A stretch of 62,962 nt of DNA, the filler included, from Trichosphaerium sp. ATCC 40318 (lineage: Eukaryota; Protista; Tubulinea): NCBI GenBank assembly GCA_038496445.1. It is 3 parts of 3 records of this genome, joined end to end, with 100 filler letters (N's around TTAATTAATTAA, not from the genome) between each part and the next. Parts side by side here need not be neighbours in the genome. Positions count along the whole stretch, not along the records: positions 29,811 to 50,439 come from JALMLS010000533.1; 2 more parts are not named here. One strand, 5' to 3'. The position numbers and the translations under genes are program-made. Below are positions 11,854-47,223 of this stretch, piece by piece. The stretch's first letter is position 1, and each line of letters starts with the position of its first letter. The notes beneath the pieces are model-generated. The model worked only from the letters and a program-made list of their open reading frames with translations. It searched no databases and was not told the origin of the DNA.

Positions 11854-13805
11854 CTAGTTGTTTTGCAGCTTTGGACCGTCCGATTTAATAATAATCTCGG
11901 TTATATCACGTGTAGGTTCTGGTGCTCTTTCTGGTCTCAAGAGTGGGATCTTAAGCTCTGTGCTGGCATTATCAGTCCTTGCATCATCTACAAGGTGTAA
12001 GTAACGTTTGAACAACGCGCTAAAACGAGAGAACGACAATAATTATCAAGGTGAGCGTACGCTTGGCTTTTTGACCGAGAATGTTTATTACAGGAGCTGG
12101 AGTTGCAGAGTTACGTCGTGAGCGATTGCCCTCGCCCATCTTGGATTTGGCGAATGCAATGTGTAGTGGTTGCTTATTAACTGGGAAACCTTGCAAACGC
12201 TTCATGCTACTTGTAGAGCATTGGATGTCCTATTTCAAAAAACCAAGTAAACAAAAAATAAACATCGATTCTGCGAAGGCCAAGTTTGTAGCCACTCGCC
12301 CTGTAGTGGTAACGTACAGAAAATTCTACCCAAGCCAAAGCTTGATCTTCTTTTTGTACAACTCTAATGCGTTTGTAGCCTGGCATTCTAATGGAAGATA
12401 TTAGTACACACCAAGACACACGATTGAGTAGAAATACGCACAAACCAAACAAAGGTATCAAGTCTGCTTCTTGAGTCTCACGTGCAAGATTACGCACATA
12501 AAGTGTAGAGCAAGGAATGCTGTTGTGACGGGAATTAGCCTTAGGTAAATATTACACCACAGGAAAGAAGGTTACGCTACAAGAGTTTGGTCTTTGTACA
12601 CCAAACAAGAGAAAAAAATTAAATTAAAAAAAGACAACCACGCACTCTGCTACGTCTTCCAGGTGAAGTAGGAGCACTACATACTGCTCTTGGTGGTGGT
12701 ACAGAAAATCCTGGTGGTCCCTTTGTGCTCACAAAGAAGCTACTATGCGTCAGCACGCTCAGGTACAAAGAATGAGGTAAAAAAAATCTTTTCTTTTGAA
12801 GCGATCAAAAAACCAAAGATAAGGCTCACCTCGAGTTATAGACAGACGCTATCTTAGTTGACAAAGTTGCTATAGGTGAGGTTAGAATACTGGCTCAATG
12901 CAGCGTTGTTTTCTAGTGATACAAAGCTATAATCAAGACTTTAAACCGAAACATACCGTCTGACTGGTTCAAGTTTGTAATACGTGAGTTTGTGTTGGCG
13001 AACAGTACGCGAAGATTACCTAGTACTTGAGGGTCCATTTGGAGGCCCTAGAAAAGACAGTCAGTTCAAGTATTTCCAAAAGTATGATTGACCACCAAAT
13101 AATAACCCAAGAGCGATGAATAAGCGTTAAAACGCTTCTTTGTCAATATTTGAAAACTAAATTGCATGCTCGAATTGGTTCCAACACCCAACCAAACACC
13201 AACCGTTTTACAGTGCAACGTTGCATTTTTCGGGTAATTGTAGCAAAAAAAAAAAAGAAAAGGGAAAGATAAACTACCCACAAACTCATTTTTAGCTCTG
13301 ACGTACATCTAAAGTATCACGAGCCACCAGGGCGGATGTTCGGTCGCTATAGACTACGAACGCGGCAGGCTAGGCAAAAAACAGTGAGACCTTTAATTGT
13401 TGAAAGTTGGAATAAAAAGCGCAAAAAAATCAAAAAAACAAACAAAAAAACCTCTTGGCAAAACATGAAATGGGCCATTGGTGCGCTACACGTGCGAAAT
13501 TACGCGTTTCAGCACAAAAACAAGGGCAACCACCCATCTAGGTTAGTGTGCAAATAAAAATCTAGTTTTTACACTTCCGTGGCCGCCTCGAGGTTCGAAG
13601 GGCGCCTAATATAGGTACGTACTTGTTTGCCCTCCTTCAGCGAGCACCCTTGATAGCCCGGGTACACCCTGAAGAGATTATGCACCTCGCGCTCTTTTAC
13701 GTCAGCAGGGAGGCCTGATACGAATAACGTTCGTATTTCTTCCACTGTTTCAATATTTAGTGATGGAAGGGATGAAGCATCTTGAGAGAGTGGAATAGTA
13801 TCCAT
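11854..13805 (-). CDS. Two-RRM RNA-binding protein of RBPMS/couch-potato/U1A-like type
   Basis: RRM1 [26 protein letters not shown]2 STLYVRNL...[22 protein letters not shown]...[17 protein letters not shown]. Confidence 0.75.
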
Positions 13806-32650: not shown

Positions 32651-33226
32651 GTTCTATTGTATATATTCAATGTGGTAATAATTGTATTGCTAACAAAATT
32701 AGTCAAAACGAAAAAAAAGTGACACTTTGACACTTGAGATTCAATTTCGTGGATCTTTTTTTTTTTTGTCAATACATTATTGTGTAATACAGACCATTTG
32801 AATTCCTTTCTATTCCTCTCTTCCTCACAAAAATATGTTATGCTTTATTATTAGTGATAAAAACATTATTTTCATTCGAACTGTAAAGTTCTGTGAGGTG
32901 GAAAAAAAATCTCAATGATTTTTTGAAATTGACTGCCTGTTGGATTTTTTTCTCATATCTTAATTAGGCGTCAACGTGCAATGCAAGAGGCAGGGTTTTT
33001 GCAATCTTCATTTTCTACTGGAGGATCATAAAAATAGACCTAGTCGGCCTGTAATATAATAACTCTATTGCTTCTGTATCTGCTAAATTACGCCATAAGA
33101 GTGAATGTGAGTTTAAAATGCTTCAAATTTATGGTTGTTAAACCAAGATTAAGTGTATCAAACTGTGAACTTTCTGAATTGTTTTTCCCAATACACTTGC
33201 GTTGTTTTGTGACATAGTCAAAAAAA

Positions 33227-33313
33227 TGCAGAGAGTGGGACTCGAACCCACACGTGATTTTCATCACATTGTGTCTTGAACACAACCTCATTAACCAATT
33301 CGAGCACCTCTGC
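33227..33313 (-). tRNA. tRNA-Leu(CAA)
   Basis: Acceptor stem GCAGAGG/TCTCTGC-A, anticodon arm TTGTG-TTCAAGA-CACAA, long variable arm, T-arm GTGGG-TTCGAGT-CCCAC. It is followed directly by a T7 Pol III terminator (33220-33226). Confidence 0.92.
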
Positions 33314-33321
33314 AACGTATG

Positions 33322-33392
33322 TGGGACAACCAGGAATCGAACCTGAACTGCAGCACCTTCAATGCCATGTGCTTCCGTTACACCATTGTCCC
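33322..33392 (-). tRNA. tRNA with GAA anticodon (nominally Phe), atypical body
   Basis: GGGACAA TG GTGT AACGGAA GCAC A TGGCA TTGAAGG TGCTG CAGT TCAGG TTCGATT CCTGG TTGTCCC A. This is a complete 71-nt cloverleaf with a 4-nt variable loop. Confidence 0.8.
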
Positions 33393-42519: not shown

Positions 42520-45500
42520 ATGGCAATGGAAATAGACACTTTCGAGAGCCTAGCAGGTGAGCCAGAGCAAATTCATCCCCCAGATGCTGTTTTCTACTGG
42601 GAGGACTCAAAACCAACTGGAGCGATTGGCTGGGTTGTGTTGGATCGCGTTATAAACAGAGTAGCAGGAGGAGGCATCTTTATGCATCCAAACGCAACGG
42701 AACAGGTGCGATACGTTGACTGTACCTCGTATGCGCTTTAAGCGCTTCATTGGTGTAAAAACTCCATACTGCACCAAAACGTTGGTGACCTAGCAATTTG
42801 CGTGCCATTCACATGCACACATGCACCAACGCCTAACGAAGTAGTATTATTATTTAACGAATCTGAAAACGCTAATCAAAATCGTGCAACTCAACTCTAA
42901 AACGCCATAGGAAGTAGCAGATATTGCTCGTAACATGTCTAGAAAGTTTACAGTATGCGATCCGCAAATCGGTGGCGCTAAAGCTGGTACGTATTATAAA
43001 AAACGTCAAGATACGTTTTTAATAGCGTAGAGCCGTTATTTTTTATCTCAAAGTGTCAAAATCTTTCATGTTAATTCTGTAAGTGGTAACACGTTAAAAA
43101 ATCGCTTATAAAAACGCACATTGCTGTTTTCGTATTTTTGGTAGCACATTTGGCGTTTCCCTTATGAAAATATGAAACGTCACCTCACCTCACATTGATT
43201 TTAAAGAAAGATAGGTATTCGATTTAATCATCGTGATGCCAGGGCAAAAGAAGTACGTCATTTTACGAGGTTTTACTTTTTTTTTTTCTTCTTTTTTTTT
43301 TTCGAAAGTAGACATTAATTGTCTATTAACAGGTTCTTCGCCGGTTCATTATTGATAATAAGACTCTTTTGAGTAATGTATGGGTTACAGCAGGAGATTT
43401 AAATACAGATGACAGGTTTATAGAACAAGTTATTCAAAATGACTTGGGATTACCAACAATGCAGTATGTGATTTGTAGTAATTCTTTCACAATTTAATTA
43501 CATCAATTGATTTTTTTTTCATTTAGACATGTACTAGCACAGACATTTTCACGCGCTACTGGACAACCAAATCGCGCTGGAAACTTATCCTCTATAATTA
43601 TACATCCAGCATGTAAAGAAAAGTTTTTCCCGCTCATTGAAGTACGATGTTGTATTTATTGTTTTAAAAGTTACCTTGTTATTCTTTTACGTTCTGCGCT
43701 TATGCTAACAACGTTACAAATAGGGTTCTGTAGGCTATGGTATATCAGAAGCTATACGCACAGCGATAACTCTTACAAACCCTGCTGGTCTTGGTACATA
43801 AAAGAACCTTTGTTGTTACACCATTTAACAGTACCTTTTATGGAATAGGTAAATTCCGTGTTATCATTCAAGGTTTTGGTGCTGTTGGTAGTTCGCTTGC
43901 TTATTATTTGGTCCATAGAAATATAGCTAAGGTCGTCGCCTTATGTGACAAGGATGGGTTAGTCTTTGAATAGGAATAGAACATCACCTTGTTACTTTTT
44001 TGCTAACCTTTTTCTCTAAGGTACATTTTTGATCATAATGGTTTAGACATCTATGATGTATTATGTGCACGTCAAGCGTGAGTTTAAATACAAAACAACA
44101 TGTATCATTACATGATGCTAATATGTCATTTTTACAGGCGTATACAAAAGCTGATGATGTCTAAAGGTTCTCCAAAACGAATAGCTGAAAGTGCTAAAAA
44201 CTTCTTCTGCAATTTGAGTCCCGCTCAAAAGAAAAAATTTAATGCTGTCACAAGAACACAAAATTTTTCAATTGTCGGTAACGCACAGTTTCTTGCACAG
44301 TTTTTAGCTTGTACAAAGGTAATCATCGAGCAAATCTTAAAATTTTCTTAGTTTTTGTTGACATTCTTTGTGCTTGCAGGCAGAAGTTTTTAGTCCCTGT
44401 GCATTGCGTTATCAAGTGAGTAACGATATTGTACAATCTATGATACACACAACATGGAGAGACGTCAAAGACAGGTAATAAGTTCGGTAGTCAAAGCATT
44501 GCTAACATGGTTGTAGATATCTCGTATGTGGAGCAAACAATCCTTATGGTACTGTCACATCAGCTGGTGCATTGGTGGGCGACGATTCTGGATCAGTACA
44601 GTGTGTACGTCAAAATGAAAAGCTTTTAACAACGTAGGTTGTACATCTGTTAATATTTATCTTAGACACTCCGTGATGCTAATGTATGTATTGTTCCTGA
44701 TTGGGTTGCAAATTCTGGAACTGCTCAGCTATTTCATCGTGCTATTTCACTTAACTTTAACATAAATGTACGCCTCCTTTATTTCCTTAATTCCCTGTTA
44801 CTAGCCTATGTAAACTACACGTTTTCAAACCAATTGTTTGGACGCTTACTGATATTTAATAATAGTATCCAAACCTTGCTGAGGAAGTACTAGAGGCTGT
44901 TGGAAACCCAATCAAGTAAGTTTTCTCTTTTTTTTCATTTTTATCAAATTCAAGTTGGTATCATTACTAACTCGTTTGGTATGTAGGACGTATATAGAAA
45001 AGTCTTACGCTCTCGTTGACAAAAAAAAACGGTTTTTAGAATATGGTTGCTGCAAAAGAGCTCTTGAGGTACATTACTTAGATTCGAGATAGTCCTCTTC
45101 GTGTTGATGTTTTTTTTTGACTTTACGTAGTTGCTTGATAAACCCGTATCTCTCTTTGAGAGCTTCAAGAATGTTACAAATCCTGCAAACTCTAGATATT
45201 CTTTGCCGCCACCGTACTCTACACTCACTGTCGATGACAGATTAAATAGATGTACACGATGGGCTGTCGAGTGCAGTGGTGTAGAAGAGTTTAAAGAACT
45301 ACTTCGTATTAGTAGAAATCCTGTTGCACTTGATGGTTGCGAACCTAGTGGGCGTATGACAATAGCACAGGTACAATAGATGATATTCAAATACTTGAAT
45401 GCAGTCACATCTGTTCTCAACGTGTTTTAACCTGTGTTGTTTTTTTAGATACTTACAAAGAAGTATATGGTTCAATTGCTTACGTCCTCTGGTTTTACAT

Positions 45501-47223
45501 ATTTATTTTTAATAGCCGATTGGTTCGCATATATGAATCATAAGGTAGGTGTACGATAGCAAAAAAAATAGTAACCCAAGGATCCCACTATAACCCAAAC
45601 AACTTTGTTTGATATTTTTTAAGTGAAAAATGGTTGACTTTTAGTTCGTTTTGGAGTTCGGTTGCTCACTGTTTTCTTTGTTAGTTGGGTGGAGATAAAT
45701 CAAAGATTAAGATTGTTGGACAATATTTTATTGAAGTTTTTAAAGCATCTGGACTAGATTTATCACGTGTTCAATTCTTATGGGCATCAGAAGAACAAAA
45801 AAAATATGCTGATAAATATTGGTCACAAGTCATTGATATTTCAACAAAGTACTTTTACAATCTATCTTCCTTGAGATTTCTGATTTTGTGCCTTCACCAC
45901 CATTCCTTACTTCTTATTAGATTCAATTTGGCTGATGTCAAAGACTGTTCTGTCATTATGGGAAGAGAACCAACGGATGAGTTATCTGCTTCTATGGCAA
46001 TGTATACTTGTATGCAAGCAGCAGATGCCTTATTTCTAGGCGCTGATGTATGTCAAATGGGAACAGATCAAACAAAAGTTATAAACATGGCTAGAGCATA
46101 CTGTGATAAGTCAGGAGGACAGTACAGAAAACCTATTGTACTAGCAAACCCAATTATAAGGTACGACTGACTTCAAAAAAAAAAACACCAGCACAGCTTT
46201 ATTTTCTTCAAGTTGCAGCGAATACAGCTCTATTCGTTCAAATTCTTCGCTTGTTCTGGGCGTTTTACCTTTTTTTTTAACTTGATCCTTTTTTTCCCTC
46301 TTCAAACATCATGTGTATCACTCCTTGTTAGCCGCTCTTTATCCTTGTAAATCAAGAAAAAAAAGCCACGTGATAGTCTAATAGTTTTTGTTTTGTAGTG
46401 ACCTGTATGGCAAGAGTAAGATGAGTAAAAGTAAAGCTGATGCAGCTATATTCGTTGATGATACACCCGCTGTTGTTAAGCAAAAAGTCATGAACGCTTA
46501 TTGCCCTGAGAAACAAGTACGGGTTTTGTCATTTTTTTTTACTTTTTTCAAAAGTCGGTCAGTTGCTCAAGTGTTTGTATAGGTAGTAGGAAATCCTTGT
46601 GCAGAAATGATGCAATATCTTGTGATTCCTAATGTACAAACAAGAAATGGCAACATCATAAACCTTCCAGTCGTTTTCGATACACAAAATGGAAAGAGAA
46701 TAGAAATTAGAGCAGTACAAGATTTCACTAAAGCTTACAGTGTACGTTTTCTTTTATAAAAAACCAACTATTATGTACTCTACACTACCGATGGATATAT
46801 ATTGCGGCCCCGTAACCATTCGGAGTGAAAATTATGGGACCTAGTACTAGCGACTGTCCTTTTTGTTTTGTTTTTTTTTACAAACTTATTTTTCTTTTAG
46901 GAAGGCTTTATCACTGCTTCAGACTTGAGACGAAATTTAATTCGTGAAATTAACAGATTACTTGAACCTATTAGAACACATTTTGCTACTGACGAAACAG
47001 CCAGAGAACTTCTTCTACAGGTACTAAAAAAAACCAAAACTTGGCAAAAAACAATCAACAAAAAACAGCTTTTTTTTCCATCTCTACGGGATGTCTCTTG
47101 TTTTTTGTATTTTCTGTAGTTTAAAACCTTTATATTAAACGTATGATATAGGTGCAATCATTTTCTGGGAGTCAAAATAAGACTGAAGCTCAAAATGGAG
47201 CTCCAAACGGATTGTACCACTAA
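42520..47223 (+). CDS. Fusion protein: Glu/Leu/Phe/Val amino-acid dehydrogenase plus a divergent tyrosyl-tRNA synthetase (~870 aa, ~22 exons)
   Basis: Dehydrogenase motifs AGGG, MSRKF, IGGAKAG, AGDLNT, QGFGAVG, SPCA, GANNP and VPDWVANSG. These run through GT-AG splices, with no stop codon, into TyrRS motifs DGCEPSGRMTIAQ, IADWFAYMNHKLGGD, FLWASE, IMGR, YTCMQAAD, CQMGTDQ, KMSKS and AYCP..GNPC. Stop TAA at 47221-47223. Confidence 0.88.

Follow-up and report, generated by a model that had tools for sequence, protein, structure and literature searches.

We analysed a stretch of 62,962 nucleotides (nt), referred to below as the window, that joins three parts of the genome assembly of the marine amoeba Trichosphaerium sp. 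ATCC 40318 (GCA_038496445.1) with filler letters between them. At positions 42520-47223, on the plus strand, we found a spliced gene that is almost certainly a single fused gene, in which an amino-acid dehydrogenase of the ELFV type is joined in frame to a tyrosyl-tRNA synthetase (TyrRS). A preliminary description of this DNA had proposed about 21 GT-AG introns and a single open frame, and our independent splicing, based on three-frame stop maps and GT/AG sites, reproduces that structure as 22 exons and 21 GT..AG introns. The coding sequence of 2589 nt (862 codons) contains no in-frame stop; it starts at ATG 42520, the first in-frame ATG past the stop at 42484-86, and ends with TAA 47221-23. 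The introns measure 42-238 nt, with donors that are mostly GTACGT/GTAAGT-like and acceptors that are mostly TAG. The piece that carries the gene (29811-50439, record JALMLS010000533.1) has about 37% GC; its GC content and intron statistics agree with those reported for the Trichosphaerium genome, namely 37.69% GC, introns of 75 nt on average and 8.7 of them per gene (PMC10521059).

The dehydrogenase half (amino acids (aa) 1-460) is encoded by exons 1-14 (42520-45068), all features of the gene being on the plus strand. Exons 1 to 6 lie at 42520-42705, 42911-42986, 43215-43252, 43333-43463, 43527-43641 and 43724-43793, exons 7 to 12 at 43849-43957, 44021-44077, 44138-44318, 44380-44474, 44517-44604 and 44666-44767, and exon 13 at 44866-44915. 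Along these exons the spliced frame reads AGGGIFMH (42664-87), MSRKF (42935-49), GGAKAG (42971-43216, interrupted by intron 2), AGDLN (43390-404), QGFGAVG (43869-89) and NSGTAQLFH (44711-37), so that MSRKF, GGAKAG, AGDLN and QGFGAVG, the four motifs singled out in the preliminary description, are all present. Exon 14 (44987-45068; TYIEKSY..KRALE) is a bridge exon that supplies the final helix of the dehydrogenase and includes a run of nine A (45021-45029, KKK).

The domain-joining intron 14 (45069-45130; 62 nt, GTACAT..TAG) is followed by exon 15 (45131-45370), whose start (45131-45250, aa 461-500) encodes a linker with the family motif NPANSRYSLPPP at 45179-45214. The TyrRS-like half (aa 501-862) runs from 45251 to 47223 through exons 16 to 18 (45449-45544, 45685-45848, 45921-46160) and 19 to 22 (46399-46516, 46583-46741, 46901-47020, 47152-47223). 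It opens with a degenerate HIGH region, ALDGCEPSGRMTIAQ at 45326-45370, in which L527 is encoded at 45329-31 and T537 at 45359-61, and continues with MYTCMQAAD (46000-26), CQMGTDQTKVI (46051-83) and KMSKS (46418-32). The peptide that had been described across the junction, ..LEAVGNPIK followed by TYIEKSY..KRALE and LLDKPVSLFE.., matches our frame letter for letter.

Transcript data cover both halves of the gene. Twelve of the 21 junctions are found exactly as modelled in spliced contigs from two public runs, and since these contigs are spliced they derive from RNA. A contig of 188 nt (run X1) joins exons 12, 13 and 14, including the joint 44915|44987, while a second contig of 1105 nt joins exons 15 to 21 and also supports the joint between exons 21 and 22. 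The contigs extend from 42494 at the 5′ side to 47328 at the 3′ side, which bounds the untranslated regions. In addition, an open reading frame (ORF) from transcriptome MMETSP0405 of Trichosphaerium sp. ATCC 40318, P0001, is 100% identical to aa 569-862 of the model. With both halves seen in RNA-derived contigs, the fusion gene is an expressed nuclear gene. We also observed that runs X2 and X4, which carry a different organism code (B), contain spliced contigs that are 90-97% identical over 43869-45300 with synonymous differences only; these variants indicate that the samples also contain another strain of the amoeba or an organism closely related to it.

We accept the joint 45068|45131 because there is no usable ATG for a separate TyrRS, because variation in related contigs is synonymous, because homologues are uninterrupted at this point, and because a transcript fragment of a second eukaryote crosses it. 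Exon 14 has no in-frame Met. Directly upstream of exon 15 its frame is closed by a stop, and within the exon the first Met is aa 535, which already lies inside the Rossmann fold. A start at ATG 45043 was considered and rejected, as it is out of frame and meets stops with or without splicing of intron 14. Related contigs differ from the gene at 23 letters, and in the modelled frame every one of these is a synonymous third position. Four fall in the Met-less linker (45199, 45205, 45208 and 45232; aa 483-494) and another four in the TyrRS part. Under neutrality the probability of this outcome is about 1e-14 for the 23 variants and about 1e-5 for these eight, indicating purifying selection there as well. 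An antisense ORF of 156 aa at 44950-45420 was dismissed as a mechanical ORF lying opposite a strand whose coding is established by homology and synonymous-only variation.

The homologues lead to the same gene structure. In a single BLASTP high-scoring segment pair, aa 19-843 of the fusion protein align with uninterrupted ORFs of 750-920 aa, of which there are more than 35; P0016 is the best match (49% identity over 826 aa, E = 0). These intron-less homologues are collinear with the model at all 21 junctions, none of which shows an indel exceeding one column, and the joint ALE|LLDKP aligns with contiguous sequence of the AAERLKQP type. P0010, a Trinity transcript fragment in EukProt from a second eukaryote, proceeds from the equivalent of the bridge exon through the linker into TyrRS, and is the nearest relative of the amoeba TyrRS half (99% branch support; 50% identity). 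The run of nine A had been named as a place where a corrected length might introduce a stop; the frame on either side aligns without gaps to P0010 and to the family, so that the homopolymer length is consistent. Collectively, splicing, homologues, selection and P0010 bear out the claim of a single gene in which the dehydrogenase is joined in frame to the TyrRS.

Retention of intron 14 would stop the frame 11 codons on (..RALEVHYLDSR*) and leave a dehydrogenase-only product of 471 aa. An isoform of this kind is conceivable from the sequence. The length of the product is near the 456-469 aa of the stand-alone homologues P0199-P0205.

A homology search with P0016 recovered about 45 proteins with the fusion. 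They come from assemblies in JGI, ENA, Logan and NCBI, and are either unnamed or, in JGI, called just "tyrosyl-tRNA synthetase". The search for the three Pfam domains suggested in the preliminary description found ELFV_dehydrog_N, ELFV_dehydrog and tRNA-synt_1b together in six cluster representatives (P0016, P0057, P0100, P0105, P0107 and P0124). A linker of about 40 residues with an NPxxSxYxLPP motif, to which the amoeba NPANSRYSLPPP aligns, is conserved throughout the fused family, and both amoeba halves group with fused members in trees, which are unrooted. In an AlphaFold2 (AF2) model of P0016 both halves are confident (mean predicted local distance difference test (pLDDT) 91.9) and the linker is a coil (pLDDT 76-87); with a predicted template modelling score (pTM) of 0.61 for the whole, the arrangement of the two halves is not predicted. 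The ESM Atlas returned no usable match for P0016. Because there are dozens of fused relatives, variation is synonymous and P0010 carries the same join, the fusion represents a conserved family and not a one-off.

The P0016 search also yields ELFV-like proteins that stand alone and measure 456-506 aa. Among them is P0202 (EukProt EP00118, Oscarella pearsei), a complete protein of 456 aa from the same divergent subfamily, 46% identical to the amoeba N-terminal half; it is filed under a sponge transcriptome and may originate from the sponge or from an associated microbe or virus.

We found no description of the ELFV-TyrRS architecture in the literature searched. A phylogenetic survey of 84 TyrRSs from giant viruses, published in 2024, nowhere uses the words dehydrogenase, fused, fusion or decarboxylase (PMC11304981). 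The novelty claimed in the preliminary description thus appears to hold with respect to publication and fails with respect to occurrence, at least 40 fused relatives being already present in public data. The fusion is a conserved and apparently undescribed architecture of two well-known enzyme families.

Next to this family stands a second TyrRS fusion of another kind. P0032, a protein of 763 aa, combines Pyridoxal_deC, a decarboxylase of amino acids that depends on pyridoxal phosphate (PLP), with a full TyrRS. It is encoded on contigs of two independent ENA assemblies (L028:6236-8527 and L029:1216-3507), among genes without known relatives (ORFans) and F-box/ankyrin genes. In the tree the TyrRS of P0032 groups as sister to the Megavirus chilensis enzyme (99% support). 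P0032 supports a link of TyrRS fusions to amino-acid metabolism in general.

Both halves can be assigned to their enzyme families. For the dehydrogenase half, P0016 scores 42.4 and 61.6 bits against PF02812 and PF00208 (cut-offs 25.3 and 23.4) and five other fused relatives also pass, while in the amoeba, where exons were searched singly, exon 7 remains below threshold (20.4 bits). The profile of the family N-terminal half matches solved glutamate dehydrogenases (GDHs) weakly, with E 1e-24 at about 19-21% identity, but spans the diagnostic motifs; against Thermotoga GDH, MSKKF aligns with MTWKT, GGAKAG with GGGKGG, TAGDLN with PAPDVN and QGFGAVG with QGFGNVG. By this alignment the substrate Lys, catalytic Lys and catalytic Asp (equivalents of K113, K125 and D165) and the GxGxxG motif are kept, as the preliminary description had stated for the catalytic Lys, Asp and Rossmann motif. 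The AF2 model of P0016 residues 1-463, taken as a proxy for the amoeba N-terminal half, reaches pLDDT 93.3 and pTM 0.90, and the top 50 PDB matches of the P0016 N-terminal half in Foldseek are GDHs and one phosphinothricin dehydrogenase, with template modelling scores of 0.54-0.71; the GDH matches extend along the entire model.

The residues that bind the side chain of glutamate in GDH are replaced. These are K89 and S380 in Clostridium symbiosum numbering, which we take to be the ligands of the glutamate gamma-carboxylate; in the family K89 becomes G (GPAKGGIR versus GvaGGGiF) and S380 becomes F (GGVTVS versus GTAQLF), and the amoeba protein reads AGGGIFMH and NSGTAQLFH at these sites. Because both gamma-carboxylate binders are replaced, the dehydrogenase half is not a glutamate dehydrogenase, and the replacements agree with the earlier guess of a substrate other than glutamate. 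We infer that this half would be an active NAD(P)-dependent amino-acid dehydrogenase of another specificity. Across the family it most likely acts on a pair of non-acidic amino acid and 2-oxo acid, and from the aligned residues one may reasonably suppose that its substrate is hydrophobic or aromatic.

The TyrRS half is full-length and of the type that had been proposed. In the single-exon Pfam search exon 18 was the sole exon above cut-off (tRNA-synt_1b, PF00579; 41.7 bits versus 21.1), P0001 scores 106 bits, and exon 18 matches PDB TyrRS chains with E 1e-17. The family profile matches the TyrRSs of Leishmania, Plasmodium, Toxoplasma type and mimivirus over the full chain (about 350 residues) with E 1e-116 to 1e-166. 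Furthermore, the family consensus is canonical throughout, with AYDGFEPSGRMHIAQG, YPCMQCAD, CQLGxDQRKVN and KMSKS.

The amoeba copy departs from this consensus. It deviates at 15 of 88 family-conserved columns in the TyrRS half versus 4 of 105 in the dehydrogenase half, and among the relatives 33 of 35 deviate at 0-7 of the conserved columns (P0194 at 19 and P0195 at 12). The amoeba replacements include Y527L, F530C, H537T, W561L, W591F, N681I, H703N, G708D and Q712K. In the HIGH region the family AYDGFEPSGRMHIAQG stands against the amoeba ALDGCEPSGRMTIAQI, with CYDGFEPSGRMHIAQ in Plasmodium TyrRS (3vgj). GRMTIAQ of the amoeba thus carries a Thr where GRMHIA is found in all 35 fused relatives, in P0010 and in 3vgj, and by the alignment to Plasmodium TyrRS T537 replaces the only His of the HIGH motif in this TyrRS subtype. 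Likewise, ALDGC of the amoeba corresponds to (A/C)YDGF in the family and 3vgj, the Tyr being invariant in the 35 aligned fused relatives; L527 replaces a Tyr that presumably binds the substrate hydroxyl (the equivalent of Tyr32 in M. jannaschii). The KMSKS motif and the Y/Q/D/Q tyrosine pocket are intact, MYTCMQAAD and CQMGTDQTKVI aligning with YPCMQCAD and CQLGxDQRKVN of the family, while the Asn after DQ.K(V) is Ile. Accordingly, of the claim of a full-length TyrRS of the plant/protist/mimivirus type, length and type hold, and the amoeba enzyme is non-canonical in having Thr for the HIGH His and Leu for the Tyr. Because the sister fragment P0010 retains Y, F and H at the replaced sites, the degeneration must have arisen in the Trichosphaerium lineage itself. 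Purifying selection persists in spite of it, as seen in the eight of eight synonymous differences in the linker and TyrRS part.

The preliminary description had also advised looking for a separate TyrRS in the genome. Such a gene is annotated: a row of the published annotation table lists gene model TRSP33704.t1 on scaffold 00202, of 534 aa, as "tyrosine-tRNA ligase" with a best match in Acanthamoeba castellanii at E 2e-164 (PMC10521059). A separate TyrRS of this length would release the fused paralogue from a housekeeping role. A chain of 534 aa has the size of a YARS1-type enzyme. No second plant-type TyrRS of MMETSP0405 was found among the top 120 relatives of P0001.

Taken together, we consider it probable that the Trichosphaerium gene is a single expressed member of a conserved fusion family, encoding a functional dehydrogenase with a TyrRS-like accessory or regulatory domain. 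In the family at large, a working TyrRS would be tethered to a non-glutamate amino-acid dehydrogenase in a bifunctional protein, the canonical motifs suggesting that the TyrRS half is probably an active synthetase coupled to the dehydrogenase. In the amoeba copy the dehydrogenase would be functional, and the TyrRS-like domain would no longer charge tRNA efficiently. By analogy with the degenerate synthetase paralogue HisZ, compared below, it may instead serve as a dimerising and/or ligand-binding module for tyrosine, ATP or tRNA. We propose an accessory role for the amoeba because the HIGH His, the Tyr and 13 further conserved residues are lost and a separate TyrRS is annotated.

Several points weigh against this interpretation. 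None of the public-run reads or contigs compared with the gene covers the domain-joining joint 45068|45131, and a single mRNA across intron 14 of the Trichosphaerium gene is what we infer from the evidence on either side. What we say of domains and folds in the amoeba derives from exon pieces, from P0001 and from relatives that are 49-57% identical. With KMSKS and the four pocket residues intact and under purifying selection, the amoeba TyrRS half may retain residual or altered adenylation. The separate TyrRS, TRSP33704.t1, is described here from its row in a supplementary table (PMC10521059). The guess at a substrate draws on a pair of positions in an alignment to solved GDHs with about 19% identity, and the enzymatic activities of both halves, like the regulatory role, are read from sequence.

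The preliminary description had put forward another function, a "make-and-activate" enzyme, in which the amoeba protein would reductively aminate an aromatic 2-oxo acid (e.g. 4-hydroxyphenylpyruvate) and the TyrRS half would adenylate the resulting amino acid, either to charge tRNA or to form amides. The conservation of both halves together in more than 40 relatives speaks for such a coupling, as do G and F in place of the glutamate-specific residues, the retention of KMSKS and the Y/Q/D/Q pocket with synonymous variation only, and the existence of a second, independent TyrRS fusion to an amino-acid enzyme, the PLP-dependent decarboxylase of P0032. However, in the amoeba the HIGH His, the Tyr that binds the tyrosine hydroxyl and 13 other conserved TyrRS residues are replaced, while Y, F and H are kept in 35 relatives and P0010; the annotation table offers a separate TyrRS for the same genome; and channelling is unsupported, the AF2 geometry between the domains being not confident (pTM 0.61 at pLDDT 92). 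We consider this function unlikely for the Trichosphaerium protein: the mechanism is plausible for the family and weak for the amoeba copy. The alternative of an amino-acid sensor, also raised in the preliminary description, fits the amoeba copy better. A broader, speculative proposal, which we regard as doubtful, is that ELFV-TyrRS and the PLP-decarboxylase-TyrRS form an undescribed class that hard-wires tRNA charging to the making, destroying or sensing of tyrosine or other aromatic amino acids, controlling the supply of Tyr-tRNA in giant viruses and some protists, and that the amoeba synthetase has become a pure sensor or scaffold.

A viral origin has to be weighed as well, since the surroundings of the relatives invite it. 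Dense, intron-less, ORFan-rich contigs are the look of nucleocytovirus genomes. We read four contexts of fused genes, which are 76-89% coding where measured. A 108-kb JGI contig (L005) and a 98-kb ENA contig (L006) are 83-89% coding, intron-less and rich in ORFs without a Pfam match, and also carry a topoisomerase II (TopoII) of 1162 aa, kinases, BTB, LRR, DUF5754 and DUF4379; a 98-kb contig of GCA_040384025.1 (L002) carries FNIP, collagen, ATG8 and XPG genes, and L026 is a compact DNA contig with the fused gene. The fused gene of GCA_040384025.1 (L002:10001-12768) is called as three ORFs (737 + 72 + 98 aa), and its TyrRS match resumes past a gap of about 41 nt (12193-12235) that may be a short intron or a frame break.

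Searches for a viral signature gave mostly negative results. No nucleocytovirus hallmark gene was found in 22-kb pieces of the fused-gene contigs. Scanning IMG/VR with P0016 alone returned just the Megavirus TyrRS, and with the family alignment 19 giant-virus TyrRS loci that are about 50% identical to the fused C-terminal half, none of them with a dehydrogenase half. The TyrRS ORF of Megavirus chilensis (L004, 8001-8999) as extracted has 424 aa, about 70 aa above the other giant-virus TyrRS ORFs (343-389 aa). A pattern scan of IMG/VR for the TopoII had no match, and a homology search returned just unnamed short or metagenomic TopoIIs. In L005 the octamer of mimivirus early promoters is enriched, though its copies do not lie upstream of genes, and the ORFs that fused-gene contigs share with pieces of giant-virus metagenome-assembled genomes (MAGs) are the TyrRS and two weak matches only. 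On balance we lean towards a viral identity for the fused-gene contigs of the relatives. In the Trichosphaerium genome itself, 1581 gene models have been reported to originate from giant viruses (PMC10521059). Transfer between amoeba and giant virus is plausible in either direction, the trees being unrooted and the contigs without taxonomic assignment.

It is quite another matter whether the amoeba gene is a decaying relic of such a transfer, captured already fused from a nucleocytovirus and now losing its function. The many gene models of giant-virus origin in the genome, the dense, intron-less, ORFan-rich contigs of several fused relatives, the giant-virus MAG TyrRSs at about 50% identity to the fused half and the degenerate state of the amoeba TyrRS half would all agree with this. 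Against it stand the 21 spliceosomal introns, compared with a genome mean of 8.7, which indicate that the gene has long been nuclear or is native to the amoeba; the spliced contigs in two studies; and the intact frame of 862 codons with 23 of 23 synonymous differences. Moreover, no fused copy with the invariant NSGTAQLF pattern was found in IMG/VR, the fused-gene contig pieces lack a hallmark gene, and the TopoII search gave no named viral match. We regard a decaying viral relic as very unlikely.

Most improbable is that hand splicing has merged two adjacent genes, a dehydrogenase that finishes within exon 14 or shortly past it, and a TyrRS gene downstream. In its favour, the joint is in no public-run contig, the 471-aa product of intron 14 retention is near the 456-469 aa of stand-alone homologues and P0001 begins at Met569, though from a 5′-truncated contig. 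Yet from the stop that precedes exon 15 as far as aa 535 there is no in-frame ATG, selection on the Met-less linker is purifying when read in the modelled frame, exon 14 is spliced to exon 13 in RNA-derived contigs, and more than 40 uninterrupted ORFs, like P0010, read straight through the junction.

Elsewhere in the same piece of the window we observed two adjacent tRNA genes on the minus strand, tRNA-Leu(CAA) at 33226-33314 and tRNA-Phe(GAA) at 33321-33392, with 6 nt between them.

Aminoacyl-tRNA synthetases (aaRSs) are known to gain extra domains. In the literature searched we found no report of an aaRS that shares one polypeptide with an NAD(P)-dependent amino-acid dehydrogenase, and conservation in dozens of sequences, from at least two eukaryotes and probably from giant viruses, shows that the fusion is not an annotation accident. 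Giant-virus TyrRS genes are central to the debate on viral translation genes, and the ELFV-TyrRS fusion offers a concrete and testable case of coupling between metabolism and translation. The contrast between canonical family members and the degenerated but selected Trichosphaerium copy could show an aaRS turning into a regulatory pseudo-enzyme. The finding also bears on genome annotation, where ELFV-TyrRS genes are now unnamed or labelled "tyrosyl-tRNA synthetase" alone.

Known aaRS fusions include the Glu-Pro synthetase EPRS, human YARS1 with its EMAPII domain and the double-length TyrRS of Leishmania, a pseudo-dimer. As in the fusion described here, an aaRS body is joined in eukaryotes to another domain within one polypeptide. 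To our knowledge, the partners in these three proteins are other aaRSs, tRNA-binding or cytokine-like domains, and none is an NAD(P)-dependent amino-acid dehydrogenase. With the archaeal, plant, apicomplexan and giant-virus TyrRSs, among them those of Plasmodium (3vgj), Leishmania (3p0h) and mimivirus (2j5b), the TyrRS half shares KMSKS, YxxxQxxD, DQxK and the C-terminal domain. It differs from the solved enzymes in sitting, in the amoeba and the family, behind a dehydrogenase of 460 aa and a conserved linker, and the amoeba domain differs further in having Thr for the HIGH His, Leu for the Tyr that binds the tyrosine hydroxyl, and changes at 13 more conserved positions.

The N-terminal half has the two-domain fold and the catalytic motifs in common with ELFV dehydrogenases such as Thermotoga GDH (1b26/2tmg) and phenylalanine dehydrogenase (1c1d). 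Unlike GDH, the fusion family has G and F for K89 and S380, a Phe in place of the Arg of GG(I/L)R within an invariant GGGIFMH, and an extra helical insert in the NAD domain.

The closest parallel for the amoeba copy may be HisZ, a class II paralogue of histidyl-tRNA synthetase that acts as a separate subunit serving ATP-phosphoribosyltransferase. As in HisZ-like degenerate aaRS paralogues, which regulate or scaffold metabolic enzymes, signature catalytic residues are lost in the amoeba domain while its amino-acid pocket is kept, and the domain is tied to an enzyme that would act on amino acids. In contrast to HisZ, the amoeba domain is of class I and covalently fused, and its relatives in the family look fully catalytic.

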